Source of the DNA: Anolis carolinensis
Lineage: Eukaryota
NCBI RefSeq assembly: GCF_035594765.1
Contig: NC_085842.1
Location: forward strand, 109,034,782-109,098,781
Length of the DNA stretch: 64,000 nt
Direction of reading: 5' to 3'
Shown here: positions 10,850 to 52,627 of the stretch, piece by piece
How positions within the stretch are numbered: the first letter of the stretch is position 1
How the letters are laid out: each line of letters begins with the position of its first letter
The notes under the pieces: generated by a model
What the model was told of the DNA's origin: nothing
What the model saw: only the letters and a program-made list of their open reading frames with translations
The model's database searches: none
Made by a program: the position numbers and the translations under genes

Positions 10850-11272
<423 letters not shown>

Positions 11273-26187: not shown

Positions 26188-26368
26188 CTGGGGCAAATTC
26201 TCAGAATGCTTTTCCACTGGGTCCTAGGAACTGGGCCTCCGCTCACACTGTATGAACCATCACAACTGTTTTGCGTCAATGTGTGATAAGATCTTTTATC
26301 TTCCTCTTGCGTGAAGTGACATGTCTGCCCTGAAGTCTATTTTAAGAATTCTTTTTATTGATAATGCC
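26188..26368. promoter_or_regulatory. Candidate distal enhancer upstream of cytokine A
   Basis: Identical 19-mer CTGGGGCAAATTCTCAGAA (GAS TTCN3GAA) and 28/35 GATA block shared with 44723-44907. Confidence 0.55.
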
Positions 26369-30904: not shown

Positions 30905-31034
30905 AGATTGTGGTTTTTGAATCCACTGACATCACTTATCAGCTTCCTCTGACAATATAAATATTCAGTTTACAAGTGAGATACAAACAGTAAGAATTTC
31001 ACTTGTGGTTCTTAGCAATCCAAAGAACGTGGTC
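30905..31034 (+). promoter_or_regulatory. Cytokine A proximal promoter / 5'UTR
   Basis: TGTGGT (RUNX) 30909, TGACATCA (AP-1/CRE-like) 30927, TTATC (GATA), TTCCTCT, TATAAATA 30956; homologous to cytokine B promoter. Confidence 0.7.
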
Positions 31035-31169
31035 ATGTCTTTGCCAAAACTGCTGTGCATCTGCTGCTTCGCAGGAATTGTTCTTACAGCTCCAACATCA
31101 CCAAACAACTTCAGAAGAGAAATCTCATCATTTCAGATAACCATAAACAATTCGTGTAATGATGCAAAG
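31035..31169 (+). CDS. IL-4/IL-13-family cytokine A (IL13 syntenic position), exon 1: signal peptide + helix A
   Basis: TATAAATA at 30956, ATG 31035; MSLPKLLCICCFAGIVLTAPTSPNNFRREISSFQITINNSCNDAK|gtaaat; 135 nt, phase 0. Confidence 0.88.
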
Positions 31170-31629
31170 GTAAATCTAATATGTCATTTTGTTATGTATA
31201 TTGTTGATGTAATATTATGGCTGTTGTTTATGCTTATGCTGAGCACGTGGGAAATTGTGGACCATTTTTCACCTTAGCAATGTCCTCCTGATGCTTTAAT
31301 GTGCATTGATTTTCTAGAGATATGGCAGCAACGGGATTTGTATCCTAATACAAACAAGCACCCTGGGAAGAAATTATATGGGGGGGGGGGGGAGTGCTAT
31401 AATTTAAACATTTTTTTAAAAAAAGCTCTCTTGAAAAAGAACAGACGCCAAAGATACGAGACGTGAAACTGGATGATTCCAGAATTAAAAATTCTAATGT
31501 GCTGATTTGGCTGAATTGAGAGACATTCAAATGAAAATAGGACTCCCTGAAGACAGAGTGATTTTGAATCTGAATTCTCCCTAACATACATGAGTGATTT
31601 TGATTTTGGTGAAACACAGAGACCCATCA

Positions 31630-31842
31630 TGTGCATCTACACTGTAGAATTAATGCAGTTTGACAACACGTTGACTGCCATGGTTTGATGCTATTGGAGT
31701 TGTAGTTATACAAGATGTTTAGCCTTCTTTGCCAAAAAGTGCTAGTGTTTCATCAAACTACAAATCCAGGGGGTCCATAGCATTAAGACATGGAAATTGA
31801 AGTGGTGTCAGACTGCATTAATTCTACAGTGTAGAGGCACCC
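31630..31842. mobile_element. Palindromic MITE (second copy about 45119-45320)
   Basis: gtgcatctacactgtagaattaatgcag...ctgcattaattctacagtgtagaggcac inverted termini. Confidence 0.7.
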
Positions 31843-32005
31843 AAGACAGCATGCCTCCAAAACCTGACACACCCTCGAGTTTACATAAAATAGTTTAATA
31901 ACTGGCAACTCAAAATCAAATCCCACTGAATACTTTTATCAGAGTTCTGTAATTCCTGTGCTTTGTGGGAAAGATGCTGAATTAATATATGACACCCTGA
32001 GCTTT

Positions 32006-32385
32006 CATAGAATCATAGAATCATAGAATAGTAGAGTTGGAAGAGACCTCATGGGCCATCCAGTCTAACCCCCTGCCAAGAAGCAGGAAATCGCATTCAA
32101 AGCACCCCCGACAGATGGCCATCCAGCCTCTGCTTAAAAGCCTCCAAAGAAGGAGCCTCCACCACAGTCCGGGGGAGAGAGTTCCACTGTCGAACAGCTC
32201 TCCCAGTGAGGAAGTTCTTCCTGATGTTCAGGTGGAATCTCCTTTCCTGTAGTTTGAAGCCATTGTTCCGTGTCCTAGTCTGCAGGGCAGCAGAGAACAA
32301 GCTTGCTCCCTCCTCCGTATGACTTCCCCTCACATATTTGTACATGGCTATCATGTCTCCTCTCAGCCTTCTTTTCTGCAGGTTG
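32006..32385 (-). mobile_element. CR1 LINE 3' end in cytokine A intron 1
   Basis: ORF 32097-32354 RTRNNGFKLQERRFHLNIRKNFLT; (TTCTATGA)n tail. Confidence 0.9.
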
Positions 32386-33308
32386 AGAGGAGAAACTCTT
32401 TCTCCAGAGTTTGGTACCTTTTATAAGCACTTTTTTCCTGATTCCTCTTAAGATCAGGAATCAGAGAACTGTTTTGGTGACCAACATAAGTGTGATGTTT
32501 TGTGTTTGCTTGGAAAATGTTGTATATTCAAGTACTTCTATGGCTGTTCGCTCCTCACATCCCACCACCATGCATCTCATTCTGTGCTTTCAGTGCCAAC
32601 TATGCAGAAAACAAACGAGCCTCAAGCTGTAATGCTTTCATCATAACTCCCAGTCCCTTGTGCTTATCCTATATCTTGCTTCTTGCCTAGGAACACACAA
32701 GTATGACATAAACCATTTTTTAAACCAATTGCTTTCTCACATTTACAGACCTATAAAGGACTTGTAGGGGGAAACAACTCAGTCTAAATGATGCCCTTGC
32801 ACAAAATCTTTATTTGAAACATTAGGGGTTTCATACCCCCCTTTGGAAAGGAGGTATCATTGTTGTTGATGTTGTAGTTGTTGACTGTATTTTATTCGAA
32901 AGTTCCAATTGGTAATGGGCTCTTGCACACAATCACCTGGCACACAATCTCTGCACATATTTATCCAAAAGTGGACTGATGTCATTCCTTTAACAAAGCT
33001 ACAGTTCTTGCAATTTTCAACCAATTTCAACATACTGGTGGAAACATTTCTAGCCATTTATTAATTTTTGATGGAACCACAAAGATTTTGATTGCTTGGC
33101 AGAGATTCCAGTTTTGAACCTACAAAAATTGGGTAGTATCCAAATTTAGAAAATTATTTTCCAAATTGGGTTCAAGGCTGAATCTTCCATTCAGTATTTA
33201 ACTTGAGTAATAAAATATACTGTTTCATCAAGAAAGGTTTTTCTCATTCACAGAATATGTAAACAAAGACACTTTCCTTATCTGATCTGTCACTTTTTTT
33301 TTCCACAG

Positions 33309-33359
33309 CATCTGCCTTGCTGGAATGAGCCAGTAAGAAAAATCCATTTCAAAGAAGAT
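33309..33359 (+). CDS. Cytokine A exon 2
   Basis: T-tract+ccacag|CAT...GAT|gtaagt; 51 nt phase 0; HLPCWNEPVRKIHFKED resembles cytokine B exon 2 DVPCGNQRIREIKL. Confidence 0.85.
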
Positions 33360-34774
33360 GTAAGTGATATTTTTTGTGTAGACTTCAAGAATCAGTGCCT
33401 CTACTTTCTGTTTTCTTGAATGAAATTGAAGTCACAGCAGGAAAAAACCTGGGTCATTTCAGCTTGCTAACATGAAAAAGCTGGTGTTTTAGAAATCTTC
33501 AGTAACCTCCCAGTGCCACCAGTGACTACATTTTTACAAATCTGTCAACAAGCATAAACCATGAGGCATAATTAGCAGGGCATGTAAAGCTTTTTAAAAA
33601 CAGATTATTGTCTTATAACAGATCAGTGAGAGGCAGTACTGCAATTTGAAAATGTTTTCTAATGAATGAATGTATCTACTAAAAGTTTTTTATTAATATG
33701 TTGCAAATCATTGAGAAAAGCAAACATGATATTGTATAAGGAGATAACGTAGGTGACTTAGCTTTAGAATCTAAAGTTAACCACATTGCCATTATTCACA
33801 TGCAAAGTGTTACTCTTTCTTTTCATTTTTTAAAATCTACAGTGAGAAACATTGTCTGTATTTCCTTCAGGCAGGTATTCATTACTACCTGTTCTTCATA
33901 ATGATTATAGTTAATGCTGGAAGTTCTTACATAGCCCCCAACAAAAATGTGGCAGATGTTATTTCCCCAAACTGTGCAATTTGTTTCCAGCCAATCCAGT
34001 CGGAAATATTCCTGGGAAATGTACTTTCCATCTTCTATTGCCACTACCGTGAGGAGGTCTCTCTCCGTCACTGGACCTCTTCACAGGGACTATAGGACTG
34101 ACTCCTTAGAGCCTTAAAGGTTTCAAACATGATCCACTTTACGTAATCCACTATATGCAATCCAACTAAATGGAATTCTGCTAAGCACATTCTCATTCAC
34201 ATAGCACATTCTTATACATAATGAATAATTTGATCCACTTTATCAGAACCGCAGATATATTTAAATAGAAGATATCTATCATCTTCAAAAAAATTCTGAC
34301 ATGCTTCCCCCAACTTCATTTAATTTGTAGTATGCCTTACAGTCATTTCTGACCTATGGCGACCCTCAGGCAGATCTGTCAGTGTGTTTAGTTCAAAATT
34401 AATAAGATTTTCCTGGTTGTCAGAGATTCAAATCCTGGTCTATAGGGTCCTAGGCCCCTTCTACACTGCAAAGTAGATAATCCAGACTATCTGATTTGAA
34501 CTGGTTTATATGAGTCTACATTGCCATATAATCCAGTTCAAAGCAGATAATCTGTATTTTATTTGGCAGTGTAGAAGGGCCCCTAATTCAATGCCCAAAC
34601 CACTGCAGCAGTGGTGCAACAACTTGTGACCCTCCAGGTATTTTGGACTTCTGCTCCCAGAATTCCCGGCCACTGGACAAGCTGAGAAGGCCTTCTGGGA
34701 GTTGGAGTCCCAAACACCTGGTGGGCTACAGGTTGTGCATTACTGTACTACACCATGCTCTCATTCATTTAATT

Positions 34775-34909
34775 CAGTGGTTCTCAACCTATGGGTCCCC
34801 AGGTGTTTTGACCTACAACTCGCAGAAATCCCAGCCAGTTTACCAGCTGTTGGGATTTCTGGGAGTTGAAGGCCAAAACATCTAGGGACCCACAGGTTGA
34901 GAACCACTA
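34775..34909. mobile_element. hAT MITE in cytokine A intron 2
   Basis: TIR CAGTGGTTCTCAACCT, 8-bp TSD ATTTAATT. Confidence 0.85.
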
Positions 34910-35135
34910 ATTTAATTTAATACAGAAACATTACCTTGGGATTAACGCAAATTACACTCCCATCATGTCTTACCATTGATGATATCAATAAGGATTGAGG
35001 AGAGTTGAAGATCAACATTTGGAGGGCTTTCCATTTTTCATCGCTTCTAGAGTCAAACCTAAATGAATATTGTTTGCAATGTGTATTAAACAAGAAGTGG
35101 TCATGTTGTCTTTTATTTCCAACTTTTCTTAACAG

Positions 35136-35255
35136 TGCAACCAAACATACTATCAAAATATATTCCGCCAAATCAAAGCTAATCTGAATCAGACTACATG
35201 CAAGACTATTTTTTCAAAAGCTGTAATTGCACCTGTGCTGCTTGGTAACACTTCA
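35136..35255 (+). CDS. Cytokine A exon 3 (helices B, C)
   Basis: ttttcttaacag|TGC...TCA|gtaagt; 120 nt phase 0; CNQTYYQNIFRQIKANLNQTTCKTIFSKAVIAPVLLGNTS; resembles cytokine B exon 3. Confidence 0.85.
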
Positions 35256-35614
35256 GTAAGTATCAGTGATGGTTATCGATACTGTTTTTATTCCAAAACT
35301 GTGGGAAGGGGTGCTAACATAAGGCTTATTATTTTAAAACGACTTAAACAATATACTTTGTTCAATGCAAGCATATAGTGGGCCCTTGATATCCACTAGG
35401 GTTTGGTCCCAGGGTGGACATACACAACCCATTGGTATAAAATTGCATGGCTGCTCAAGTCCCATTATATATATATACAGTGGTGTAGTAAATGCTGTCC
35501 CTTATATAAAATAGCAAAATCAAAGCATGCTTAGAACTTTTTTGTGTGTAATTGGTGTCTACTTAGTGAAGGCACAGATAGATATTGCCTTAAGACGGAA
35601 GAGGCATCTGTGGC

Positions 35615-35902
35615 CAGGGCTGTAGCCAAGGGGGGGGGGGGGGGGTTGGGGTTCAAACCTCCCCCCCCCCCCGAAAATTTTTAGGTTTTTTTTTAAAAAA
35701 CTGATTTACTCATGAATTTTAACTAGTTAACCAAATTCCCCTAAGTGTCCACTGAAGTTTATCTGTCTTGAGTGTGGACTGAAGTTTATCAATGGAGCCT
35801 GATTTCTAAATTATTTTGTGTTATGGAACTATTCTTCATGATTCGCTAAAAAAAAGTTTCACCCCCCCCCCCCCCCGAATTTTTTTTCTGGCTCTGACCC
35901 TG
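35615..35902. mobile_element. hAT-type MITE with poly-G/poly-C tracts in cytokine A intron 3
   Basis: CAGGG...CCCTG termini, 8-bp TSD TCTGTGGC. Confidence 0.75.
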
Positions 35903-36650
35903 TCTGTGGCTGGTTTGAAGGCCACTTTTTGCTCAGAGACTCTCTGAGAGCTACATGGACTCCTGAAAAATGAAACAAATTACCCCAAAGTGTCTCATTC
36001 CCAAAAAGAAGTATGTTAATCTGATTTTCAAAAAGAAATATGTTAATCTTAAACAGTACAAAATATTTCTGCAACCTACTTGGAAGGCAAACTGTAATCC
36101 CTGGAAGCTTCTAGAAGCAGCAATGTACTCGTTTTTTGCCAGAAAAAAATCAATTGAGGGATTATGGAATTATTGAGAGCCACAGATATGTCTCTGGAGC
36201 CCTCCTGTGGTCCCAATGCCCCAGTTTGCCTGGGCTTGGCCTTTAGGGAGCGTCAGGCAAAATCAAAGAGTCAATATGCACTAGTAAATGGTCAATAAAC
36301 AGATATAAAATATAAAGTTATATTGAATGAAGTACAATCAGTACAGAATTTACAATGTAATGTTAATGTTCCATACATCAAAATGAATATATAACTGAAC
36401 AATGTTTGCTCTATACATACATTTTCACTTGTTAAATCAGTCAGTTGAAACTGAAGAGCATGTCTGTAACTAAGGTTTGTGCAATCATCAGAAATGCTAA
36501 ACAATTTTTGTGAATTTACTCTCATGGGTGTCTTTTTTGAGGGCAGATGGTTTTGAACAAAAAGGGGGTGTATTGTCATGTTCATATGGTTTTTTTCCTG
36601 TTTAGTAGAGCTTAACAAGATTCTCCTTTCTTCTTCTTCTTCTTCTCAAG

Positions 36651-36758
36651 GTTCCTCACAGTTTCTCACAATCTCCTGCCACTACTCTGAAAGTCTTCTG
36701 TACAAAAGTTCAATATTATGTTGGATACCTAAAGAACGAATGTTCCAATCAGTTGTGA
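36651..36758 (+). CDS. Cytokine A exon 4 (helix D, stop)
   Basis: (TTC)n tract+ctcaag|GTT...TGA; 108 nt; VPHSFSQSPATTLKVFCTKVQYYVGYLKNECSNQL*; TLKxFC...YV..L.N.C shared with cytokine B. Confidence 0.87.
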   Translation, partial: VPHSFSQSPATTLKVFCTKVQYYVGYLKNECSNQL

Positions 36759-37839
36759 AACAAACGCCCAACAACTGAGTAAGAGCAGGAGCAATGAAGG
36801 ACCTTCCCCCCACCCACCCCAAAAGAGATAACTGACAGTTTTAAAAACACCATCACCTCATCATTTTTGTTGTTTGGGAAAGATGTCATCAAAAGAAAGA
36901 ATGCAATCATTGATTTAGTACTCTACAGATATGTGCCATGAAGTTGTCTGTTTGCCTGGGTGATCAGCCCACCCCCTTTTTGTGGCACATGGGTCATGCA
37001 AAGAAAGCATGCACAAGTATGTGCGCACTGAATCCCATGGTTGCTCTTTACCCATTCATCTATCACAACATCACATCCACCAGTTGGTGCTAAAATTCTT
37101 CCCAAATCGGGTGGGTCTGAAAAAGTAAAGGGTAGAGCTATACGCCACTCCTGCACAAGGTTGGCATGCAGCTTCTATCTGGATCTGATACCAAGAATGC
37201 AGATAAACATGTATAGCAAATTTCCATAGTGGACCCTTTCATGTGGCAAAGTTATAGTACTATGATTCCATCTTAATTGGCATGGCTGTCTCCTATGAAA
37301 TCTTGGTTTTGGGAAGTGCTAGAGCTTTCTAGCTGAGGCTTCTGGAGGCCCCTCCCTAAACTGGACATTCCCAAGATCCCATAGGATGTTTGCCCAGGCA
37401 GTTAACCTGGAATGATAGTGCTATAATTGTGGGGTGTGAGAGAGCCATGGTAAGTGCGATGGCACTCTTCAGATAGGAAGATGGGGAGTCAGGGTATTCT
37501 CATATACATCCCTTTTAAAGTGATTCTTAATAGTAGAGCCCACCTCTCAGCTGCAGCCATGGTTTAGTAAAAATCAAATAGGAATCCTAATTTGTTCCAG
37601 GATTAATTTTTTCATTTTTTTTCTGATCAATTGTAAGGCAAGTCTTTGTACCAGGTGTTAATGTAATATGATGTCTGTCAGTTTCTTTATGTCATTCTAG
37701 CCTAGATATTTTACATAAATCACATGCGGATGTGTGATTAAATGGTGGTCCGTAGATATACATCCATTTGTAACAACTGAGCAATACAGGATAGGGTTGG
37801 TGTATTTCTCATCACCCCTTAGCAGTTCTATGGCATAGG

Positions 37840-37958
37840 TTTATTTATTGATTTCTATTCTATTTAATATTTAATATTTATAAAATATTATATATTCTAA
37901 ATATGTTCTGATCTTGATCAGGAAGCAAGCCAGTGTTTAAGTGTAACACTGCAATAAA
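37840..37958 (+). terminator. Cytokine A 3'UTR AU-rich elements and candidate poly(A) signal
   Basis: ATTTA cluster 37840-37880, AATAAA 37953-37958. Confidence 0.5.
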
Positions 37959-39300
37959 GCTAAGCATCTTTCATGTCTCATACAACTTGGGTTTGGGGTA
38001 GTATTCACCTGCCCAAGCTTTGAGTTGCCATGTGGAGAGAAAACTGTCCTTCCAGCCTCTAGGACACTCTTTCAGGGGAGGGGAGACTTTGCCCATGTCC
38101 AGGTGCCTTTTTCCAGGCTTGCAAAGATTTTTTTTATTCAAGCTAAACCTGATACAAGAAAGTTTTAAATGGATATGTTGAAATATTATTTATTATTATT
38201 AGTTTTTTAAGTATTTAACTTATGTCTTAATATCATAAGTAGTTTAAAAGTATTTTAATATTTTAACTGGATGTGTTTATATTACTGATTGTGTTGTATT
38301 CTGGCTTGGGTCTCTGTTTTGGGAGACAGGCAAGATACAAATAAAAAAGAGTATCTCTCATGAAGAGGGAATTACAACCATTGACAATCACAACTTTGAC
38401 TCAGTTACATTTAACATTTTTCTTGTTATGTTATTTTGAGGTTGATCTTGTTTTTTTTTCTGATTGCCTTCATAATTTAGTATGACCCTGTAACTGAATT
38501 CATGTTTGTGTTCTGATTGCATTGATATGTATTTAAATTTATATGGAACCCTTATGTTTTTATATCAAATTGTTAATGAGAGCGGCCAATTTCATGTGTG
38601 ACATAATTTCTCTGGCATACAGATTTCTATGTACTTTTGCTTGTTTTAAATAAAGTTTGAGAAATCAGACTGTTATTTTCTTAGTATAATGACTGCATTC
38701 ACAAATGCTGTTCCCAACTTACGTTGCTGCAAAAAATCCAAAACAAAACATATTGGTATTATTGCAGAGCCCTTAAAAGCATTTTCATGCACCATATTCT
38801 CCTCCTCTCTAGCCCATGTGCTGTTATCTTTAGCTGAACTTTCTTTTAAAGGTATTTTTTCTGAGTGAAATAGTCAACAGCAAGTTTAAGAAGCTCCAAC
38901 TGTCCCACAATCTTTTCTAGAAACAACAGTGTGGGTTGTAAGAAGACATTGGTTCATCACAAGGTCCGGGGTAATTGTTTGCCCTGTATGTTGTTGTTTT
39001 TTTCAGTAATGAGGGAATTCTCTTCTGACAGTGTCTGTTTCATTTGACTCCAAGGACACTCCTTCATGTTGTTGTCAAAAGCTACTGATAGTGGCTCATT
39101 AGCTTTATCATGGAGAATTAAGGGAGTAGCATTGTTGTCCGTAGTAATTTCAAACTGGGTGTTTAAGTTAGGTATACTCACAGTTTCCTCCCTGAAGAGT
39201 TTGTCAGTTTTCAGTTGTTTAGAAACCTTATGGTGTGTTGTTGACTTGAGGCTAGTCCTATTGTGTTTTCTGTTCTCCATTTGAAGGAGAGGGAGTAGAA

Positions 39301-39615
39301 TTATAGAATCCTAGAGTTGGAAGAGACCTCATGGGCCATCCAGCCCAACCCCCTGCCAAGAAGCAGTAAAATCACATTCAAAGCACCTCCGGCAGATAGC
39401 CATCCAGCCTCTGCTTAAAAGCCTCCAAAGAAGGAGCCTCCACCACAGTCTGGGGAAGAGAGTTCCACTGCCAAACAGCTCTTACACTTAGGAAGATCTT
39501 CCTGATATTCAGGTGGAATCTCCTTTCCTGTAATTTGAAGCAGCAGGGCAGCAGAAAACAAGCTTGCTCCCTCCTCCCTATGACTTCCCCTCACATATTT
39601 ATACCTGGCCATCAT
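39301..39615 (-). mobile_element. CR1 LINE 3' end
   Basis: Same family as 32006-32385, with internal deletion. Confidence 0.85.
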
Positions 39616-41000
39616 ATAGGAAAAATAAAAACACTGGAGCCCATTAAATCAGGCCTTATTATTTTGATGCTATCTTGCATTTCTCTCAATTGATATATGA
39701 TTTATATAGGATTTTAATGGTGTCTTTTATATTGTATTTAATAATCTGGTTTTCCTTTGCCTTATGTGTGAAAGACCCATCATCTAAGCATCAAATAAAA
39801 CTTGACTTGACTTGAAACATATTGGTAAGATGAAACTACCCTGGATGTATGTGTATGTTGTCTATGAGAACTCTAGGAGGTGGATACCAAGAAAAGGCAA
39901 CACTATTATTTTTTCTGACACAAAAGCAGTATTTAAATATTAGTAAACCAAATGAAGATTGATAAGTTCAGTGATAGCACTGCCACTTTTGATGGAATGA
40001 ACCATACTGGACAGTAAGTCTTGAGGAGGGGAAAGTGTGCATGTATGACACAAAATTCATGCATTGATCAGGAATCTTTTCAGTAGGTTGTGATAACCTC
40101 TGACATCTCAGTCTAAGGACAATTGGACCTGCAAAGAAATAAGAGCATTTCCCCATCTTTGTCCTTTTTCACCAGAGTCGTCTCCATACATTTCAACCTG
40201 GTCAAAAGACACTGATATGCCTTTTATCCTACAAAAGGAATTTGATTGAAGTCTACAACTGAAATGTCTATAGGATAAAAACTGAAAGGGAAAAAGAGGC
40301 TGCCTGCTTTTTTTTCTCCACAGCTGTGAGCTGGATATTGGACTAAAATAATAGAATATTAGAGTTGGAAGAGACCAAAAGGGCCTTCTAGTACAAGATT
40401 CTCCCATTCAGGAATATATAACCTAGGACCTTATCAGACGGGTAGGGATAGAGCGGGGAACAGCGGAAGACAGCGGAGAGAACTGTCAGGCTCTGTTCCC
40501 TCTCATTAGGGTCTGTCTTCTTTCTTTCTAAGTCATTTCCCTTTCTTTCCCCACTTCCTCTTCACCTCCTCTTCCCTTTTTCAGTGACGAGTCAGGTAAA
40601 CATTGTTGCCAAATGAAAATGGCAACACCCCTCTCGATTCAAGTAACTTCCCGGTAAACAGAATGAGAGTCTAGCCTAGCTGACAATGGACCCCAAATGG
40701 CAAGACCTTTGGCTGAATTGCACACCTCTAGTGGTGAACTGTACATCTCCCATTTGAGGATCAGTCAAAGTATTAGCCACAAGGTGTCACCAAAAGACTA
40801 GGCACAAAGTGAAAAATTGCCCACATCAACTAGAATGTAATGATGATGTGAAATTTTGTAATCTGCATTGGTGGCAGATTTTCCCATATCAGAGAAATAG
40901 CCAGTCTTCAAGGTTTATATGTTTTATACTTTTTACCATTTATTGTATGTCAACATATGGCAACCCCATGAATTTTCATAGGGTTGTTTAAGGCAAGAAC

Positions 41001-41046
<46 letters not shown>

Positions 41047-41049
41047 TAT

Positions 41050-41594
41050 TCATTGGAACCTATGCCTCAAGTATCACCTCCCTGCAGTTAAGAACTGGTG
41101 GGATCACAAACCTGCAAAGGTTGTGGAAAATGAACACGCAAAGATACTGTGGGACTTCCGAATCCAGACTGACAAAGTTCTGGAACACAACACACCAGAC
41201 ATCACAGTTGTGGAAAAGAACAAGGTTTGGATCATTGATGTTGCCATCCCAGGTGACAGTCGCATTGAAGAAAAACAACAGGAAAAACTCAGCCGCTATC
41301 AGGACCTCAAGATTGAACTTCAAAGACTCTGGCAGAAACCAGTGCAGGTGGTCCCGGTGGTGATGGGCACACTGGGTGCCGTGCCAAAAGATCTCAGCCG
41401 GCATTTGGAAACAATAGACATTGACAAAATTACGATCTGCCAACTGCAAAAGGCCACCTTACTGGGATCTGCACGCATCATCCGAAAATACATCACACAG
41501 TCCTAGACACTTGGGAAGTGTTCGACTTGTGATTTTGTGAAACGAAATCCAGCATATCTATCTTGTTTGCTGTGTCATACAATGTTGTTGTGTC

Positions 41595-41639
<45 letters not shown>

Positions 41640-41790
41640 GATCTGCCAACTGCAAAAGGCCACCCTGCTGGGATCTGCGCGCATCATCTGAAAATACATC
41701 ACACAGTCCTAGACACTTGGGAAGTGTTCGACTTGTGATTCTTTGATACGAAATCCAGCATATCTATCTTGTTTGCTGTGTCATAATAAA
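41050..41790 (+). mobile_element. Dong/R4-clade non-LTR retrotransposon 3' end in (TAA)n
   Basis: ORF 41123-41506 ILWDFRIQTDK..NTPDITVV..IIDVAIP (restriction-like endonuclease PD..D); (TAA)n on both sides; duplicated 3' end. Confidence 0.85.
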
Positions 41791-41803
41791 ATAATACAAA
41801 TAA

Positions 41804-41853
<50 letters not shown>

Positions 41854-42089
41854 ATTTCTATTCCGTCTGTCTCCCCAGAGGGCCTCAGGGTGGAATAATC
41901 TGAGGTGGTTTTGCCAATTCCTTTCTTTGAAATATAGTTTACAGCAACTGGTATTCATTCACAGTCTTCCATTCAAGTACTAATATGGCTGACCTTTACT
42001 ATGTGAAATAACGCTTTAACAATTATTGTGTACCATCACCAATTGTTCTTCCAATATCAGGTATATACATCGATTTCCTAGAGTTTTAA

Positions 42090-44370
42090 CAACAGGTATG
42101 TCAAGCCAAACTGAGGACATGGACGATGTCTTTCTAGAACAGATAATCTCACATTCACAAAAGAGAGATTTAATAGTAACGGGAGATTTTAACTATCCTG
42201 ATATTTGTTGGAAGACAAACTCTGCCAAGGATATCAGGTCCCACAAATGCCTCACTTAACGTTACAGCAATTCCATTATCCAGAAGCTGAAAGAGGCAAC
42301 AAGGAGATAAGCTATTTTACATCTGATCCTGTACTAGAGGGGAAGTCAAAAAGAGTCAGATATACACGCTAGACTTGGAGAAAGCTGATTTCAGTAAACT
42401 TAGGAAAAAACTGAGCGTAATCCCAATGTCAGGAACACTAACAAAGAAAGGAGTTCATGATTGATGGTGATACAGAGATTAAAACATTTGGGGGTTTCTC
42501 CCAGAAAAGGAGACCCGTGCTAAATCCAGCAAGGGGGGTTGCGAAACACCTGGCAAGCTTACAAGAAGCAAATAAATGTTTTCCCTATTCTCAATTAGAG
42601 TCTCACCCAGGTTGGAAGCAGGGGTCACCGAGTTTAATTCTGGTCCAGCTGGAACAGGATGATGGCAGCAATATGATGCAAGAAGAACCGACATACCATT
42701 ACAGAGAAAAAGGCACTTTTTATACTTTACCATTTTGAATTTTCTGCCTCCTGCCTTCGCGCTGGTTGGTCAGGGGAGTCCCTGACAGGGAGAATCTGAT
42801 GGGGAGAATCACAGGATCCAGCATCCCTGTGGTTTGGGGAGACAAACCCAATCAGTCTTATGACCGTTTGAAAGGGCTTCGACCCCTCTTCACGTTTCCA
42901 TAAGGGAATAAGTAGGAATCCCAGAATTTCCCCATTGGCCCAGGCAAGCAAAGGGCTTACTGGAGTCACTCTGAGACTAGGAGACGGTGCAAGGAATACA
43001 TGGGTTCATGCAGGGAATGGGCAGAGGGGCAGAAAAGACATTTCAGATACCTGTGCTCATTCATAAAAAGGCTAAACTCATTCATAAAAAACTGATTGGA
43101 GTGTGTGGAGGCGAATCGGGGCCACTATGGCAAAACCGGAGGAGATCCTCAGCTTGGGACAAATTTTATGGCGATTTTTTGGTTATAGAGAACTGTCTGC
43201 AAAAATGTTCCTTTTGCAGGCGGGAAAGTGAAAGCAAGTTGGAAACAGTTTTCTTGCTTTGGTCAATATGTAACAGAAGTCAATGGAGCTTCAATGAAGA
43301 GAGAGTGCCTGAGGTTTTTCTGCAGAAACAATGTATCTATGTGGCTGAGGCTCTTCTGAGAGGGGGGGAAAGCCTGTGGAACTCCTGGCAGTGATCAGCT
43401 GTATGTCAGAGCAATGTGAGTGTGGGGGCTTGCGTGTTCGACATCAGTGGGCGTTTCTGAAAAGTGAGATATTGGACGCACAGTTTTAAACAGTTCCAAT
43501 AAGGAGGAAAAATAGGAGATGATCTAAGGATCTTTCAATTCAACTTAGATTTAAAAGGGACATATACAAGAAATGGAATAAGAGAGAAATCACCAAAGAG
43601 AAATTCAGAGGAATAGCTAGCCTTTGTAGGGATCAATTTAGAGAAACCAAAGCACAGAAGGACCTCATGCTTGCTAAAAAAAGTTAAAAACAATTAAAAG
43701 GGCTTTAAAAAGTTTTGTCCAGAGCAAAAAGGAAGAACAAGGAAATGGTAGGGCTGATGCATACAGGCGTTGGCAAAATGCTAGCAGGAGACAAGGAAAA
43801 GGTAGAACTACTCAACACCTTACGTGCCTGGATGCAGCAGAGAATGCAGCAGAGTAAAGGCAACATAGAAGAGGTAAAGGGGCAGTACAGGAATATCTGG
43901 CTAATCCAAATGAATTCAAGTTTCCAGGGCCACATGAACGCCATCCAAGAGTAGTAAAATAATTGGCAAAAGTAATTTCAGAACCATTGGCAATTATCTT
44001 TGAGAACAAAAGTCCCAGTAGACTGGTGGAGGGCAACTGTTGTCCCTATATTCAAGAAGAGATAAAGGGGGGACCCAAACAGTTACCGTCCAGAAAGCTT
44101 GTTTTCTGCTGCTCTAGAAAGGACACAGAGTAAGGAATGCAAATTTCAGGGGGGGGGGGGGAAGAGTCCACTTAAACATTAGGAAGAATGTCCAGACAAT
44201 AAGAGCTGTAGTGGAATATGCTTCCTCAGAGTGTGGTGAAATCTCCTTCTCTGGAGGTTTTTAAGCAGAGGCTGTATGGTCATCTGTCAGGGGTGCTTTG
44301 ATTCTATGTTACTGAATGGCAGGGAGTTGGACTGGATGGCCCTTGTGGTCTCTTCCAACTCTGATTCTGT
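42090..44370 (+). mobile_element. Decayed CR1 LINE, interrupted by an LTR-like insertion
   Basis: GDFNYPDICW endonuclease motif near 42180, RT-region remnants 43450-44090, CR1 3' end near 44350. Confidence 0.75.
42468..43446. mobile_element. Probable solo LTR inserted in CR1
   Basis: TGAT...ATCA termini, 4-bp TSD ATGG/GTGG; CR1 sequence resumes on both sides. Confidence 0.55.
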
Positions 44371-44722
44371 GACAGTGGCAGAAACAGAGTTGCACATAGA
44401 GTAACATGGCATATTTGTGGAACTCCATTGGCTAACATATGTGTGTGTCCATTTTTAGATAGCCACTCTCTTCCCTTTGTGCTTTGTCTAAAACCTCTTT
44501 TTCAGGAGGAAGGAGAAGGAGCAACTGCTTGTGCTGCCATGGAAGAGAGACACATGATGGAGGCAATTCAGATGATGAAGATGTGGGCGGTGTGGGCATG
44601 AAACAAAAGCAATCTAATTTGCAACATGCAATACAAAGAAATCCCATGCTGGAATAAACAGACATTTTAACTCTTAAGGGAACTCTGCTTCTAATCATTC
44701 ACTTGCCAACCCACACTGTCGA

Positions 44723-44907
44723 CTGGGGCAAATTCTCAGAAGGCGTCTCTTTCTGTCATAAGAATCTCCTCCATTCAGTCATACAATCAGAATCATTTCT
44801 TTTCATAGTCTTAACAATTTTGGCATTTCAGCATCAGTGATAACATCTTTTCTTGTGCTCTTGCCTTAAGTAAATAATCTTTTCTATAACACTTTTTTCA
44901 TAATGCC
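44723..44907. promoter_or_regulatory. Candidate distal enhancer upstream of cytokine B
   Basis: Paralog of 26188-26368; GAS + TGATAA..ATCT double GATA. Confidence 0.55.
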
Positions 44908-46032
44908 ATTCAAATTTATTCACATTTAATGATATGATATTTCCAGTAATAATCTCTGCTGAAATCAATATCTTTCAGCCCAACAGGCCATTTTTCCTAA
45001 AGCAGTACATGTATTACAGATTTGTTTTTTAAAAAATAATAATACTTTTTGTTTGCTGAACATCTGTTTTGAAGATAATGAATCGCAATCATGTTGGAAG
45101 TTTAGGGAGAGCAATATAGGTGCATCTACACTATATAATTAATGCAGTTTGGCACCAGTTTAACTGCCATAGCTCAATGCTATGGGAGATGTAGTTTTAC
45201 AAGGTCTTTAGCTTTCTCTGTCAAAGGGAAATTGGTGTCTCACCAAACTACCAATTCCAGGATTCCATAGCATTGAGCCATGGTGTCAAAGTGCATTAAC
45301 TGTACAGTGCAGATGCACCTTTGATTCCTCAACACTAAAATCTCTGACCAAAGTAAAGCCCCAGGATTTCAAAGGACAGACCATGCTTATGCTTATTCTT
45401 GGTCACTGCAAAGAGTTGTAATCCCTTTATCACTCTACGGAAACCTTTTAAATCCAAGTTCAGTTGAAAGATCCTTAGATCTGGTTTCTTTAGACATCTC
45501 CTATTTTCCCTCCTCATTGGAACTATTCAAAACTGTCCTCAATTGACCACAGACCCCCTGAAGCTTCCCACCAGCCATTCATACTGGGTTCATGCACCCA
45601 GATGACAAGTCATGGCATTCCTACTATAACCACTGAAGGATCATAGCTGTTCTGGCTCCACTAGCACACACTTGCAGACCCAGCGAGGGAGGAAGCAATT
45701 AACCCAGAATTCAGAAATAACTTAGGCAAGGGCAGTATATCAACAGGGCTCAGCGTCTTTACCTGTGGGAGTCTGGTTTGCAGAAGGGTAGTCATGACCG
45801 GCCAGGTTTGGAAAAACAAGCAGCAACAGCAACCAGGATCTAGGAATCTAGGCAGTCCAGGGTTTAGAGTCACAAAAATATGACCTCCATCCAGCACCAA
45901 CTCGAGTTGTCTCTTAGATGGACTGAAACCAGCTGCTCCTAATCAGGATCACCTGATAAAATCTCTCTGTAACATGTTCAATATCTGGTTAATATTTATT
46001 GAAATTTCAGCTTGTCCAGAATGTTCCAGACA

Positions 46033-47985
46033 CTTACTTACTTAGGCGATCCCTCGTAGTTCGAGGATGATTGTCCTCCATCTGTGGGGTCTTGGGGGTG
46101 TGTCTGTAGGTGGCTGAAGAGACCTATTCTTGATCTGCATGTTCTACCACAGTGAGGACATCGGTTTCCAGGTGGAAGGCGGTCCCGGTCAGGGTTGGCT
46201 TGATGGGCCTTCCTCTTGGCACGTTTCTCCCTTAAGCCCTCCATTCATGCCTCTTTGAACTCCGCAGCACTAATGGTCACAGCTGACCTCCAATTAGAGC
46301 GCTCAAGGGCCAGGGCTTCCCAGTTCTCAGTGTCTATGCCACAGTTTTTAAGGTTGGCTTTAAGCCCATTTTAAAATCTCTTTTCCTGCCCACCAACATT
46401 ACGTTTCCCGTTCTTGAGTTGGGAGTAGAGTAGCTGCTTTGGGAGACGGTGATCGGGCATTCGGACAACATGGTCAGTCCAGCGGAGTTGATGGCGTAGG
46501 AGCATCGCTTCAATGCTGGTGGTATTTGCTTCCTCAAGCACGCTGACATTTGTCTGCCTGACTTCCCAAGAGATTTGCAGGTTTTTTCTGAGGCAACACT
46601 GATGTTGCCTAGGAGTTGAGTGTGACGTCTGTAGACCGTCCACGTTTCGCAGGCAGAGACCAGGGTTGGGACGACAATGGCTTTATAAACAAGCATCTTG
46701 GTATCTCTATGGATGTTCCGGTCATCAAACACTCTCTGCTTCAATGTGTTGTTGAAGGCTTTCATGGTCGGGATCACAGGGTTGTTGTATGTATTTCGGG
46801 CTGTATGGCCATGTTCCAGAAGTATTCTCTCCTGATGTTTCACCCACATCTAAGACAGGCATCCTCAGAGGTTGTGAAGAGAGAATACTTCTGGAACATG
46901 GCCATACAGCCCGGAATACATACAACAACTCTACTCTCTGCTTAATTCTGAAAAATGCTGCACTCGCAGAGCTCAGGCAGTGTTGTATTTCAGTGTCGAT
47001 GTTGACTTTTGTGAAGAGGTGGCTGCCAAGGTAGCAGAAATAGTCAACATTTTCTAATGTTACACCATTAAACTGTATTCCTGGCTTTGCAGAGGGATTA
47101 GCTGGTGCCTGTTGGAAGAGCACTTTGGTTTTCTCAATGTTCAATGAGAGGCCAAGCTTCTCGTATGCTTCTGCGAAGGTGTTTAGAGTGGCTTGTAAGT
47201 CTTCTTCTGAGTGCCCACAAACTACGTTGTCATCGGCATATTGGAGTTCTATAACAGATGTTGTGGTGTCCTTGGTTTTGGCTCTCAGTCTGCTGAGGTT
47301 AAATAGCTTGCCATCTGTCTGATAGATGATTTCCACACCAGTGGGAAGCTTCCCATCAACAAGGTGAAGTATCATAGCGATGAAGATGGAAAATAAGGTA
47401 GGGGCAATAACACATCCCTGCTTGACACCTGATTCCACCTTAAATGGGTCACTTTGGGAGCCGTTGTTGTCCAAGACTGTTGCCATCATGTCTTCATGAA
47501 GGAGCCGCAGGAGGTTCACAAATTTGTCAGGGCACCCGATTTTTTGGAGGATGGTCCAGAGAGCGCTGCGATTCACTGTGTTGAATGCCTTTGCAAGGTC
47601 AATGAATGCCATGTACAGAGGCTGATTTTGTTCCCTGCATTTTTTTTGGAGCTGTCGTGCAGTGAAGATCATGTCCACTGTTCCTCTGGAGGGGCGGAAG
47701 CCGTTCTGGGATTCTGGGAGGGTGTCTTCTGAAACAGGGAGAAGGCGGTTTGCAAGGATTCTTGCGAGAATTTTCCCAGCGGATGTTAGAAGGGAGATAC
47801 CGCGATAGTTCCCACAGTCTGTTCTATCCCCTTTCTTGAAAAGGGTGATGATGGTGGCATCCTTGAAGTCTGCTGGGACTTTCTCGGCCGCCCACACTTT
47901 TTCAATGAGCTGTTGGAGTTGTTGTATCAGCTCAGGTCCACCCTCTTTGAAGATTTCAGCAGGGATCCCATCAGGTCCGCTGTAT
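46033..47985 (-). mobile_element. RTE-clade LINE, 5'-truncated, RT domain largely open
   Basis: ORF 46725-47999: GPDGIPAE, NYRGISLL, FIDLAKAF, GVKQGC, YADD; (TAAG)n-like tail. Confidence 0.92.
46742..46932. mobile_element. Penelope pseudo-LTR inverted pair nested in RTE
   Basis: 11-bp TSD ACTCTCTGCTT (46731-46741 / 46933-46943); inverted arms. Confidence 0.8.
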
Positions 47986-48032
47986 TTGTTAATATCCAAT
48001 GTTAGCTACAGTTAACATGCAACACTTTTTTT

Positions 48033-48270
48033 TCATGTCAGGAGCGACTTGAGAAAATATAAGTCACTTCTGTTGTGATAAAATTGGCCATCTGTAAAGA
48101 CATTGCCTAGGGGACGCCCGGATGTTTTGGCATTTTTACCATCCTTGTGGAAGGCTTCTCTCATGTCCCCGCATGGAGCTGGAGCTGATAGAGGGAGCTC
48201 ATCTGTGATCAGCAATTCAACCTTCGATTCAGCAGTCCTGCCAGCACAAGGGTTTAACCCACTGTGCCAC
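48033..48270 (-). mobile_element. Sauria SINE
   Basis: tcatgtcaggagcgacttgagaaa...ggagctggagctgatagagggagctc. Confidence 0.8.
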
Positions 48271-48843
48271 TATGCAATGCTGATTCTGTATAAGCTCATG
48301 GGCTGGTTGCTGAAAAAATAATTTGTGTCTATGGAGTGCCCTTTTCCATTCCTAGTTTTTATGTTGTAGGGTTGAAAATTTCTTGATAGCCCCTTAATCT
48401 AGCACTTTGTTTTCTGATAATTAATCAACAGAAACAGCAAGAATTCAGTTATCGAGGTCAATGTAACTAAGGTAGTATATAAGAACGTAGGATGAGCCAT
48501 GGTGGAGAAAATTAATGGTTGGCTGAGTCTAGTATGGCTCATCTTATGTTCTTATATAGTGCCTCAGTCACATTAAACTTAGTAAGCAGAAATGCACTTT
48601 ATATCTACATCCTATGTGCATTCAGCCATATTGTGCTATATTGATTATATGGCTCTTTTAACTGATTCTACTTTGATAGAGGATTTATCCAGCTTATATA
48701 CCTGGTTTATGTAATGTTGTTATTGTCTTCATGCTGATGTATTTTATTTTATGTATTATATATTTTATGTATGGCATCTTTGTGTGCTATTTTGTAAGCC
48801 GCCCCGAGTTCCTATGGGAGATGGTGGCGGGATATAAATAAAG

Positions 48844-48898
<55 letters not shown>

Positions 48899-49339
48899 GA
48901 GTAATTACAGAATATAAGTCTGATGACCTGTAACATTGTATGCCTGTCTTTCTGTGCTTGTACATACAAGGCCTATATGCCTGCCTGAGTTTCTAGTAAA
49001 GTTGGGAGGTACAAGGTTGGCAGAACCCATTTAAATTAGTTTATGTGCCTACAACATGTCATGGTGGTGGTGATTGTGTTCATTTATGTAATTTCCGACT
49101 TATGGTGACCCCAAAGTGAATCCTATCATAGGGGTTTCTTGGCAAGATTTAGTCAGAGGAAAGTTCCCTTTGCCTTCCTCTGAGGCTGAGAGAATATGTG
49201 CTTATGTCTAATATTTACATAGAAAAATTCTTACTTGCCTAATGTTACTATTGTGTTGTAATTCCACACCAGATAAATCAATGCGTATAATTTTCAGCCA
49301 TGAGAAATATTGTTTGAAAATCCCCTTTTCTTAATGTCC

Positions 49340-49550
49340 CCATAATTTCCATTTTATCATTCATTTTCCATCTTATCATTTGGATATGTGGTTTTTGGGT
49401 TCTCTGAATAGGCAAATTCACAACTCATCTCTACATTTACGTCAGGTATTTATCTGTTTCCTCTGGTTATAAATAAGCAGCTTGCAAATAAATGACAAAG
49501 CAGTAAGGAGGACACCATTCATTGACCTGACCAATCCAAAGAACGAGATC
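49340..49550 (+). promoter_or_regulatory. Cytokine B proximal promoter / 5'UTR
   Basis: Alternating TTTCC (NFAT) and TTATC (GATA) 49346-49377, TGTGGT 49387, TTCTCTGAA (GAS) 49400, TTACGTCA 49437, TTATC, TTCCTCT, TATAAATA 49468. Confidence 0.72.
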
Positions 49551-49688
49551 ATGCTTTTGAAAGCAATCTTTGCCTTTTGTTTCTTGGCTCAAGGTATTTC
49601 TAAAATTGCAGCGCAACCAGTCAAGAAGTTTGAAAGGGAAGCACAAGAATTGGTGAAGATTGTGAATGCCACATGCACGGTGTTAAAG
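49551..49688 (+). CDS. IL-4/IL-13-family cytokine B (IL4 syntenic position), exon 1: signal peptide + helix A
   Basis: TATAAATA at 49468, ATG 49551; MLLKAIFAFCFLAQGISKIAAQPVKKFEREAQELVKIVNATCTVLK|gtaaga; 138 nt phase 0. Confidence 0.9.
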
Positions 49689-50535
49689 GTAAGAAGAGCA
49701 TCTTGCGTTTTAGGATCATGTTATTTTCTTTTTCAGTCAGAGTATTGCTTGCTTGACCAGGCTCAGTTGTGTATTGCTTTATGAAATATATAGTTTTAAT
49801 GTTATAAAAATGTTCATACCAAATGCACAGAACGAGTATGCCCAATTTGATGTTATTAATAAATGAATGTATTTCGGGGTGGGTGGGGGGTGGGCAATAT
49901 GTTTCATTTATTATCTTGCTGAAATCAAGATGTTGAATGAAACATGATTTATACTTTAAGAGATAATACATGAATAGAGTTTTAATTAACAGGCAAACCC
50001 TATTTTGTCTTATGGACCCCACCCCCTGTTTATAACATCTGGGGTTAATTTATAAACAGACGTATTGATTGAATTGATTTGGCATTTGATAGGAATGAAA
50101 GGTCAATTTAAACAGAAATAAGTAAGTAGAACAGAAATTTGAAATACTGAAAAATGTTTGCTTCAAACCAACATCAAAGCAATTTAACAATTTCAATGTA
50201 TCAGTCATACCTGTTTGGACATTAAGAAGTGCTAATGAATGAAATACCAAATCTTAGACCTTGCTTAGAAGAGTACACAAGGCAGATAAGTGTTGTGCAC
50301 AAGGCAGATAAGTGTTGTGAAAAACATTAGGGACAAGAAGACATCAGAGCTGGTGTGTCAACCCCCCAAATTCACAAAGGACATATCCACAGACAAAAGT
50401 TACCTTATGGTAGTAAGGCTATTATTTTTATCCGCTTCTCAACTAGATGAAAAGGTTACTAGACCTTCTCTTACAGAAAGTACAATTTAAAAAAAATCCC
50501 TTCCCTGAACTATAACTTTTTTTCCATTTGCACAG

Positions 50536-50610
50536 GATGTGCCTTGTGGGAATCAGAGAATAAGAGAAATCAAATTGGCACCTGCTATGAGATGGAACAA
50601 TAGAACACTG
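50536..50610 (+). CDS. Cytokine B exon 2
   Basis: ttttccatttgcacag|GAT...CTG|gtgagt; 75 nt phase 0; DVPCGNQRIREIKLAPAMRWNNRTL. Confidence 0.87.
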
Positions 50611-50750
50611 GTGAGTGATACATTCAAAAATTATATACAAGGGATAATATGCCTACAGAACATTTGTTCAGCCATTGAGACATCTAAGACTTATGAAGGT
50701 TAGCTTAGAAAATGATCATGCATGATTCAATTTGATTTTTCTTTAAACAG

Positions 50751-50873
50751 TGCGCTTCCTACAGCAATACATTCTGCCAAGTTAACCGTGCTCTGAAGGA
50801 ACTCAACCACGGCGAGTGCAGAAATGCGAACGTGACACAAATCCAGGGAGCTTTAAAACCCCTAAAAGGACAT
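50751..50873 (+). CDS. Cytokine B exon 3 (helices B, C)
   Basis: ctttaaacag|TGC...CAT|gtgagt; 123 nt phase 0; CASYSNTFCQVNRALKELNHGECRNANVTQIQGALKPLKGH; TFCQ resembles the IL-4 TFCR motif. Confidence 0.9.
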
Positions 50874-51064
50874 GTGAGTATCCTAATTAAAAACAACCCC
50901 ATTGCTGAAATACAAAACTTAAAGAGTTTAACCAAGAGGCATCTGGGGATTTGATGCATTTTACAACAAACCTTAGTACCACTTTCATTGTGTGCTAACA
51001 TTTGTTGAACACATGAAATATTCTTAATGTGTCACTTTAAGAACAGTGATAGATTCTTAAAGGG

Positions 51065-51725
51065 AAGGGCCGGGAGGGCTTTTGCACAATTAAAACTCGT
51101 GCACCAACTGCATCCGTACCTCTAAAAGTCTGATCTGGCCACAGTGGTCCACGCCTTAGTTACATCTTGGATAGATTACAGCAATGCACTCTACTTGGGG
51201 CTGCCTATGAAGACGGTTCAAAAACTGCAATTTGTGCAGAGAGCAGCTGCCCGATTTCTAAAAGCAGCTGACTACAGGGAGCATACTCCTCCCTTGTTAA
51301 AGCAGCTCCACTGGCTGCCTGTGAGTTTCAAGGCCCAATTAAAAGTGCAAGTTATCACCTATAAAGCCCTTTATGGTTCAGGCCTTTAGGTCCTCAGGAG
51401 TGGGGGCTTCTCACGGTCCCACCAAGATTGACTATTTTTAGTATGATGATGGACCTTTAGCCTTGTCAATATCTATTGGTTTTAACTGGTCTTGTCTCCA
51501 CGGTATAATATGTCTTAAACCCAGTACAATTTTTAACATATGCATTTATTTATTGCGATATTGTTTTTAAAGTTTTAAATGATTATTAGTTATATTATAT
51601 ATTATGTCTTTTTTTTTTTTTGCTTATGTATGTACAGTATTGGGATTTGATTTTGTGGTGAGCCGACCCAAGTCCTTGTGGAGAGGGGGCGGGATATAAA
51701 TAAAGTTTATTATTATTTATTATTT
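51065..51725 (+). mobile_element. L2 LINE 3' fragment in cytokine B intron 3
   Basis: VHALVTSWIDYSNALYLGLP..LQFVQRAAAR..LHWLPV; tail gggatataaataaagtttattattat. Confidence 0.85.
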
Positions 51726-52513
51726 GTTCAAAACTGTTTTCACATTGAAATGAATAAGAATTGAAATGGGTGGGTTTCAGCTTCATTGTTCTGCCTCCTT
51801 CCAAGAAGAAAATCTTGGTGCCTACTTGCTGAAGATGGAAATATATATTGCCCTATGGCATGTAAATTAAACCCACCCAGTCATTAGAATCAGTATGAAA
51901 CGACAAGACAACTGTGTTTTGGACATATATTTAAATCATTAAATGGTCAATCTATAAAGGGATTAAATAGAGTATAGACTATTCTTAGTATGATGATAGG
52001 CTTTTAACCTTTTGGCCTTTTAGCCTTGTTGGAAAGATCATGCATCAGATCTCAATAATCGTCATGTATGTCCTTTTTGTAAATTTGGTATTTTGAACTG
52101 TGAATATGAGCCCATAACAGTTTCAGTTGGATTCTTAATTTCCTGACAATATAGGAATAGTTATGAGGATCAGGAGAGGTTATCAGCCTGCCCTTGTGGC
52201 CACTTGTCCCTCTTCTGAATGGGGTGATGCTGGGGTGCAACTTTCACAAGCAGAAACAAAGCAGTTCTGTAGGGCTGCTCTGTTTCTTCTGGTGTCTCTT
52301 TATCTCGGTCAGGGTCACGTGATTTATCAACCACATTCATATCAGAGACAATCTTGTATTTCCTTATTTCAAGAGACACCAGACTTCCCTTTACATGAGA
52401 TGTGTCTAAAGATGGGAGACTGTGGTCCATGTTATTTTATTCCCATAACAGCTGGTAGGGAACCATTGAAGCTGAACAAAGATCACAGATCTGTTGTACT
52501 TTCTTGTTTACAG

Positions 52514-52627
52514 GTCAGCTGCCAGTCATCAAACCATCACATCGTCCACATCACTCTGAAGGCGTTCTGCCCCAGACTGCTCAATTATGTCCAGACATTG
52601 TACAACATATGTGCAAAACGATATTAA
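52514..52627 (+). CDS. Cytokine B exon 4 (helix D, stop)
   Basis: tttcttgtttacag|GTC...TAA; 114 nt; VSCQSSNHHIVHITLKAFCPRLLNYVQTLYNICAKRY*; aligns without gaps to IL-4 helix D (TLENFLERLKTIMREKYSKC, recalled). Confidence 0.9.
   Translation, partial: VSCQSSNHHIVHITLKAFCPRLLNYVQTLYNICAKRY

Follow-up and report, generated by a model that had tools for sequence, protein, structure and literature searches.

Cysteine registers and a proposed disulfide map for two tandem IL-4/13 family genes located 3' of RAD50 in Anolis carolinensis

The window analysed here, a 64,000-nucleotide stretch of Anolis carolinensis DNA (contig NC_085842.1 of assembly GCF_035594765.1, positions 109,034,782 to 109,098,781; all positions below are those of the window), is AT-rich animal DNA without a single N, and it contains two neighbouring, unannotated, four-exon genes on the + strand, 3' of a RAD50 exon. 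These genes, called A (31035-36758) and B (49551-52627) in this work, are discussed as members of the IL-4/13 family of cytokines, with emphasis on their cysteines (Cys) and on the disulfide bonds that these may form. Their gene models were rebuilt from splice sites and reading frames in the window. All six introns were found to be of the GT-AG type, in phase 0, and to be preceded at their acceptor sites by polypyrimidine tracts, and the exons contain 45, 17, 40, and 35 codons in A and 46, 25, 41, and 37 codons in B, the counts for exon 4 excluding the stop codon. In gene A, exon 1 (31035-31169), which runs from the ATG to a GT donor in phase 0, encodes the signal peptide as well as helix A; exon 2 (33309-33359) encodes the AB loop and exon 3 (35136-35255, 120 bp) helices B and C, both being delimited by splice sites and phase 0; and exon 4 (36651-36758), which has a tblastn match to exon 4 of gene B, encodes the CD loop and helix D. 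In gene B, the exons, likewise delimited by splice sites and reading frame, are exon 1 (49551-49688), exon 2 (50536-50610), which encodes the AB loop, exon 3 (50751-50873, 123 bp), and exon 4 (52514-52627). Exon 2 of A has an alternative in-frame donor at 33333, the use of which would affect no Cys. An 'FRQ' motif at 33866 was considered as part of exon 3 of A and rejected, the true exon 3 being located at 35136. The N-termini of both predicted proteins are hydrophobic, which is consistent with signal peptides.

Synteny, gene structure, and one strong motif match indicate that A and B are tandem paralogues belonging to the IL-4/13 family of short-chain four-helix cytokines. Genes of this family are located in the T helper 2 locus between RAD50 and KIF3A. 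The synteny anchor in the window is a RAD50 exon 5' of A (11130-11235, + strand), which matches residues 1129-1162 of the 1312-residue RAD50 chain 9q9h_A (E 6.7e-11, phmmer against PDB chains) and lies on the same strand as A and B; therefore, the order RAD50-A-B mirrors the order RAD50-IL13-IL4. KIF3A was not identified within the window, in which no search aimed at KIF3A was made. The RAD50 coding sequence at 10880-11275 (+) was confirmed against RAD50 in the PDB, and a coiled-coil-like open reading frame (ORF) at 789-1148 (+), with only weak Pfam matches, is a candidate RAD50 coding exon. Vertebrate IL-4, IL-13, and IL-4/13 genes all have four coding exons and three phase-0 introns (PMC4905449), and the same structure was found in both A and B. 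When the 16-residue helix-B motif of gar IL-4/13, taken from the supplement of that paper, was scored without gaps against every six-frame position of the window, the top position was in exon 3 of B, with a score of 57 against 31 for the next one and with 10 of the 16 residues identical. A and B are regarded as paralogues because their exon 4 peptides are reciprocal best tblastn matches in the window (E 0.005), and because their promoters, described below, and their exon-2 intron/exon junctions (74% identity over 73 bp) are similar to each other; the identity between the two proteins is only 21-34% per exon. Neither a third copy nor pseudo-exons were detected in the window by tblastn, and a weak match at 27061-27129 was rejected as a further copy, being full of stops. 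The size of exon 3 has been reported as 126-177 bp in tetrapod IL-4, 105-114 bp in tetrapod IL-13, and 120-129 bp in shark, gar, and frog IL-4/13 (PMC4905449), and exon 3 of both A and B falls outside the two tetrapod classes and inside that of shark, gar, and frog, which hints that A and B are less differentiated than mammalian IL-4 and IL-13. Since the exon 3 sizes fit neither tetrapod IL-4 nor tetrapod IL-13, A would be 'IL-13' and B would be 'IL-4' by gene order alone.

Outside the signal segments, to which the additional Cys of both proteins are confined, A has six Cys and B has eight, as verified codon by codon and base by base on the + strand (A: 31155, 33318, 35136, 35199, 36699, and 36741; B: 49674, 50545, 50751, 50775, 50817, 52520, 52568, and 52610). 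All six Cys of A have a counterpart in B at exactly the same register, as counted from the exon ends. These are at register -5 of exon 1 (A 31155-31157, TGT; B 49674-49676), at register +4 of exon 2 ('LPC', 33318-33320, in A; 'VPC', 50545-50547, in B), at registers +1 and -19 of exon 3, which correspond to codon 1 and the BC turn, respectively (A 35136-35138 and 35199-35201; B 50751 and 50817-50819), and at registers -19 and -5 of exon 4 (A 36699-36701, in 'VFC', and 36741-36743; B 52568-52570, in 'AFC', and 52610-52612). In both proteins, seven residues separate the Cys of exon 1 from that of exon 2 (C-x7-C). When the residues of A were shuffled within each exon and the Cys were counted from the exon ends, six matches out of six were obtained in none of 500,000 shuffles and five out of six in 28. 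This register test provides a valid statistic for the Cys and replaces a count of Cys matched in alignments, which was rejected because aligners pull Cys together, shuffled sequences averaging ~2.3 matches. The two Cys found in B only are located at codon 9 of exon 3 ('TFCQ', 50775-50777), in helix B, and at codon 3 of exon 4 ('VSC', 52520-52522), in the CD loop. Opposite the CD-loop Cys of B, A has a His (CAC, 'VPH', 36657-36659) in exact register, and opposite the helix-B Cys it has an Arg ('FRQ', 35166-35168), which is aligned only after a shift of two residues; the codon for this Arg, CGC, is one transition away from TGC. There is no Cys in helix B of A, shifted or unshifted. A first-pass annotation of this DNA had stated that six Cys are positionally shared and that B has exactly two more, facing 'FRQ' and 'VPH' in A; the register test bears out the former, and the codons agree with the latter once the shift needed for the Arg is allowed.

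The positions of the Cys in the fold were derived from the exon-to-helix map of human IL-4 and from AlphaFold2 (AF2) predictions of single exons. In human IL-4, the signal peptide as well as helix A is encoded by exon 1, the AB loop by exon 2, helix B, the BC turn, and helix C by exon 3, and the CD loop and helix D by exon 4 (PMC4905449). The AF2 predictions were made for single-exon fragments folded out of context and inform on secondary structure only. Exon 4 of B was predicted to be coil at residues 1-6 and helix at residues 7-36 (pLDDT, the predicted local distance difference test score, of ~90 for residues 21-30), and in this model the Cys of 'VSC' falls in a loop, and each end of helix D has one of the remaining two Cys close to it. 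For exon 3 of B, a helix at residues 6-19, a turn at 20-27, and a helix at 28-38 were predicted, with weak support (mean pLDDT of 57.6). An analysis of the hydrophobic moment was uninformative regarding the orientation of the Cys. An up-up-down-down bundle has one pole, here called the top, at which helix A ends, the AB loop and helix D start, and the BC turn is located, and a second one, the bottom, at which helix B and the CD loop start and helix D ends. With this placement, the top pole would contain four Cys in each of the two proteins, and the bottom pole would contain two in A and four in B.

We propose, with a probability of roughly one half, that the Cys of A and B form only intramolecular bonds of four classes, of which three would be present in A and all four in B. 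Which Cys bonds with which is deduced from bundle geometry and parsimony, and the pairing put forward by the first-pass annotation appears to be the most parsimonious one. The background on IL-4 from which that pairing started, with the helix-B Cys paired to the CD loop and the exon-2 Cys to the BC loop, is correct for the human protein (Cys46-Cys99 and Cys24-Cys65, respectively; PMC3352089). The first bond would link the AB-loop Cys of exon 2 with the BC-turn Cys in both proteins and would be the canonical tetrapod bond, C24-C65 in human IL-4. The second bond, between the helix-B Cys and the CD-loop Cys, would be present only in B and would correspond to the family-wide bond, C46-C99 in human IL-4, both partners of which would have been replaced in A, by Arg and His. 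The third bond, predicted in both proteins, would link the Cys that is encoded by the first codon of exon 3 and shortly precedes helix B with the Cys of the final helix-D turn, and it was probably inherited from the fish/gar type of IL-4/13. The fourth bond, also predicted in both proteins, would link the Cys in the last turn of helix A with the Cys near the start of helix D. The number of Cys in the mature proteins is even in both A and B. If all of the Cys in A are bonded within the chain, the Cys at codon 1 of exon 3 has no possible partner but that at the helix-D end, since these are the only two at the bottom pole. The other two bottom-pole Cys in B would form a bond of the canonical C46-C99 type. 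If the canonical bond between exon 2 and the BC turn is kept at the top pole, the Cys at the end of helix A is left to pair with that at the start of helix D.

The Cys patterns of A and B were compared with those of nine sequences in the supplement of PMC4905449, five fish/gar IL-4/13 and four tetrapod-type sequences, a set that is small and phylogenetically non-independent. All five fish/gar sequences have exactly four Cys, located 4-6 residues before the helix-B Cys, at the helix-B position itself, in the CD loop, and late in helix D, and in the four tetrapod-type sequences the Cys are those of exon 2, helix B, the BC turn, and the CD loop, with a fifth near the N-terminus in one case; helix D and the stretch just ahead of the helix-B Cys are free of Cys in all four (PMC4905449). 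The pre-helix-B Cys and the helix-D Cys are therefore either both present or both absent in each of the nine sequences, and both are present in A and B. The staple that would tie the helix-D end to the start of helix B is probably a retained fish-type pair and not a new one, the homology of these Cys with those of fish being one of position class only. On the other hand, the pair that would link the end of helix A to the start of helix D is lacking in all of the nine sequences. All nine published sequences and B (50775) have the helix-B Cys, B also having its CD-loop partner (52520), and A lacks the helix-B Cys. It has been reported that only one Cys, designated C4, is conserved in all sequences compared (PMC5440397), and we infer that C4 is the helix-B Cys because the latter is present in all nine sequences of our set. 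With regard to the helix-B Cys, A is an atypical member of the IL-4/13 family, and the joint absence of this Cys and its partner in A is the most unusual single feature. No weight was given to the sequential pairing predicted for fish by DISULFIND in PMC4905449, as the pairing is sequential for the tetrapod panels too and contradicts what is known for human IL-4. Lineage-specific Cys patterns, with nine Cys positions and with individual proteins having 4 to 7 Cys, have already been described for this family (PMC4905449, PMC5440397), and the scaffold, which the first-pass annotation called unusual, is so in a relative sense. There is support for the suggestion of that annotation that the helix-B/CD-loop bond was lost as a pair from A, since the helix-B Cys is kept in B and in all of the published sequences and A has Arg and His at the two positions. 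Its description of two extra staples in both proteins was too strong, since the pair between the start of exon 3 and the end of helix D resembles that of fish and gar, and only the pair of helix-A end and helix-D start remains unseen elsewhere in the set.

Similarity between the two genes extends to the regions surrounding the exons. The proximal promoter and 5' untranslated region (UTR) of A (30936-31043, +), which contains a TATA box, is paralogous to 49450-49559 of B, with 70% identity over 112 bp by blastn, and the TATA box is located ~75 bp 5' of the ATG in both genes. This is regulatory sequence kept between very diverged paralogues. The final 20 nt preceding the ATG are near-identical in A and B, and B has a short upstream ATG (49491-49505), followed by a stop four codons on, which lies 3' of the TATA box and 5' of the start codon and the transcription of which would depend on the start site used. 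In what are presumed to be the 3' UTRs, both genes (A, 37843-37960; B, 52960-53155) contain AU-rich ATTTA and TATTTAT elements followed by AATAAA, an arrangement typical of unstable cytokine mRNAs. A 22-nt stretch is present at 26188-26209 and at 44723-44744 with 95% identity (blastn E 0.002), ~4.8 kb 5' of each of the two cytokine genes. ORFs encoding retroelement reverse transcriptases are located on the - strand at 46725-47999 (RVT_1, E 2.7e-38), between A and B, and at 58120-58668 (RVT_1, E 1.2e-07). In intron 3 of B, interspersed repeats at 51114-51401 and 51667-51727 reached a summed depth of hundreds to thousands in the contigs of all four RNA runs that were selected as candidates, and it was because these repeats are very abundant that the four runs, with a small share of words, looked like holders of the RNA.

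Several results weigh against the proposed map and against the genes on which it is built, and they are considered here together with the alternatives. Three pairings are possible among the four Cys at the top pole, and the C-x7-C pair could bond locally. Furthermore, the connectivity in fish IL-4/13 is itself only predicted (PMC4905449), and fish helix-D motifs gave no signal on exon 4 of A or B when compared with the window, so that a 'CAKR' similarity noted by eye was dropped as evidence. It is conceivable, with a minor chance that deserves to be kept in mind, that the same genes and the same fold have another wiring at the top pole, in which the Cys at the end of helix A is bonded to the exon-2 Cys and the BC-turn Cys to that at the start of helix D; a crossed variant, in which the BC turn is the partner of the helix-A end and the exon-2 Cys is bonded to helix D, is also possible. 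Such rewiring would be in line with the spacing of exactly seven residues between the exon-1 and exon-2 Cys in both genes, and with the location of all four Cys at one pole, where geometry alone does not choose between pairings. We also counted in its favour a rough estimate of the antiparallel register, in which the 'FC' of helix D would lie, judging from receptor-site residues of human IL-4, about one turn above the end of helix A. However, rewiring would break the bond between exon 2 and the BC turn that is common to human IL-4 (C24-C65) and IL-13, and the positions of the exon-2 and BC-turn Cys are kept in all four of the tetrapod-type sequences. It is quite unlikely that some of the conserved Cys are not intrachain staples at all and are instead free or engaged in inter-chain bonds, as in a dimer like that of IL-5. 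Although the case for intrachain wiring is indirect, nothing direct favours such an arrangement, and it is at odds with the even number of Cys in both proteins and at each pole, as well as with the monomeric nature of IL-4/13 family members. Human IL-4 and IL-13 are four-helical and stabilised by intrachain disulfides (PMC4905449).

The remaining results that speak against our proposal concern the genes themselves. A Pfam scan of seven of the exons gave no cytokine family, and no IL-4 or IL-13 chain in the PDB was recovered, even at E 10, in sequence searches with the exon 3 and exon 4 profiles and with exons 1, 3, and 4 of B singly. A word search of a set of 5.8 billion proteins with exon 4 of B, exon 1 of A, and exon 3 of B gave no candidate orthologue; the queries were stop-free stretches, so that proteins of 50-270 aa qualified. 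An exhaustive HMMER search with the exon-4 profile against 1.84 billion representatives gave two matches, of which the one examined, P0002, was rejected as a spurious repeat protein, the other being P0001 (2445 aa), for which no matched stretch was listed; in hindsight, exon 3 of B would have been a better query. When contigs from the four RNA runs were mapped on gene B, they covered intronic repeats only, with none on exons and no splice joints, a result that is no evidence of silence. In addition, a look-alike search of the ESM Atlas with exon 4 of B gave no usable match, and literature searches for squamate IL-4 and IL-13 gave nothing usable. Wrong gene models, or relic genes that are silent, in which case the Cys pattern would be meaningless at the protein level, could account for the lack of an annotated or assembled protein matching any exon tried, for the lack of RNA contigs on the exons of B in the four runs, and for the blank Pfam result exon by exon. 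This explanation is nonetheless very improbable in view of two intact four-exon frames with canonical splice sites and matching phases, TATA promoters conserved between the copies, and AU-rich elements and poly(A) signals in both 3' UTRs. Moreover, six Cys in register despite an identity of 21-34% would require purifying selection, and IL-4 and IL-13 are seldom detected in RNA from bulk tissue.

If the map of four intrachain bond classes is right, it would link the fish-type and the tetrapod-type Cys patterns in one molecule and would help to establish in which order bonds were gained and lost in the family. A further reading, which is tentative and which we consider rather doubtful as a whole, is that both proteins are type-2 cytokines in which the end of helix A is tied to the start of helix D by a disulfide present in no described IL-4/13 member, in addition to a retained fish-type bond, and that B would be the most cross-linked member of the family, with four bonds, and A the first without the bond between helix B and the CD loop. 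In human IL-4, C46-C99 is the bond that is reduced by extracellular thioredoxin, which inactivates the cytokine, whereas human IL-13, which keeps such a bond, was reported to be unaffected by thioredoxin (PMC9746700). If the reading is true, A would represent a cytokine at the IL13 position without a bond at the thioredoxin-sensitive position. If the map is right, the two genes would also represent a natural experiment, in which one paralogue has and the other has not the bond that acts as a thioredoxin-sensitive off-switch in human IL-4. Disulfide scaffolds are among the few features of IL-4 and IL-13 that can be compared across vertebrates. Owing to their rapid evolution, both cytokines frequently go unnoticed in reptile genomes. 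For the production of recombinant reptile IL-4 and IL-13, the map, if right, would mean that oxidative folding with three or four bonds needs to be controlled. As lineage-specific disulfides in IL-4/13 are already known, the advance is incremental, and the combination found in A and B, which comprises three bond classes known elsewhere, one apparently new pair, and the loss of a family-wide pair in A, is worth a modest follow-up.

Among the known systems closest to A and B, human IL-4 has the same four exons and phase-0 introns. Its disulfides are Cys3-Cys127, Cys24-Cys65, and Cys46-Cys99, one of which joins the second helix to an external loop (PMC3352089). Unlike human IL-4, B has no N-terminal Cys to partner the C-terminal one, it has three further Cys, at the end of helix A, at codon 1 of exon 3, and at the start of helix D, and its exon 3 (123 bp) is shorter than that of tetrapod IL-4 (126-177 bp). 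Five of the six Cys of human IL-4 appear to have a counterpart in B at almost the same exon register, at codon 4 of exon 2 in B versus codon 3 in human IL-4, at codon 9 of exon 3 in both, within the same 'TFC', in the BC turn, at codon 3 of exon 4 in both, and near the C-terminus. Human IL-13 has two disulfides (PMC4905449). A is like human IL-13 in its position next to RAD50 and in keeping the exon-2 and BC-turn Cys, the sites of one of the IL-13 disulfides, and it is unlike human IL-13 in lacking the bond between helix B and the region after helix C and in having four other Cys; its exon 3 (120 bp) is also longer than that of tetrapod IL-13 (105-114 bp). IL-7 has three disulfides, two of which tie the regions after helix A and before helix B to helix D. 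A literature search on the IL-7 disulfides gave nothing usable, and the likeness to the third and fourth bonds proposed for A and B would be a functional analogy between molecules that differ in family, receptor, and gene structure. Fish and gar IL-4/13 lack the Cys pair of exon 2 and the BC turn and the Cys at the end of helix A and the start of helix D, and they have ~9-18 residues after their helix-D Cys, where A and B have four after the last one; what they have in common with A and B is a Cys located a few residues before the helix-B site and one Cys late in helix D.

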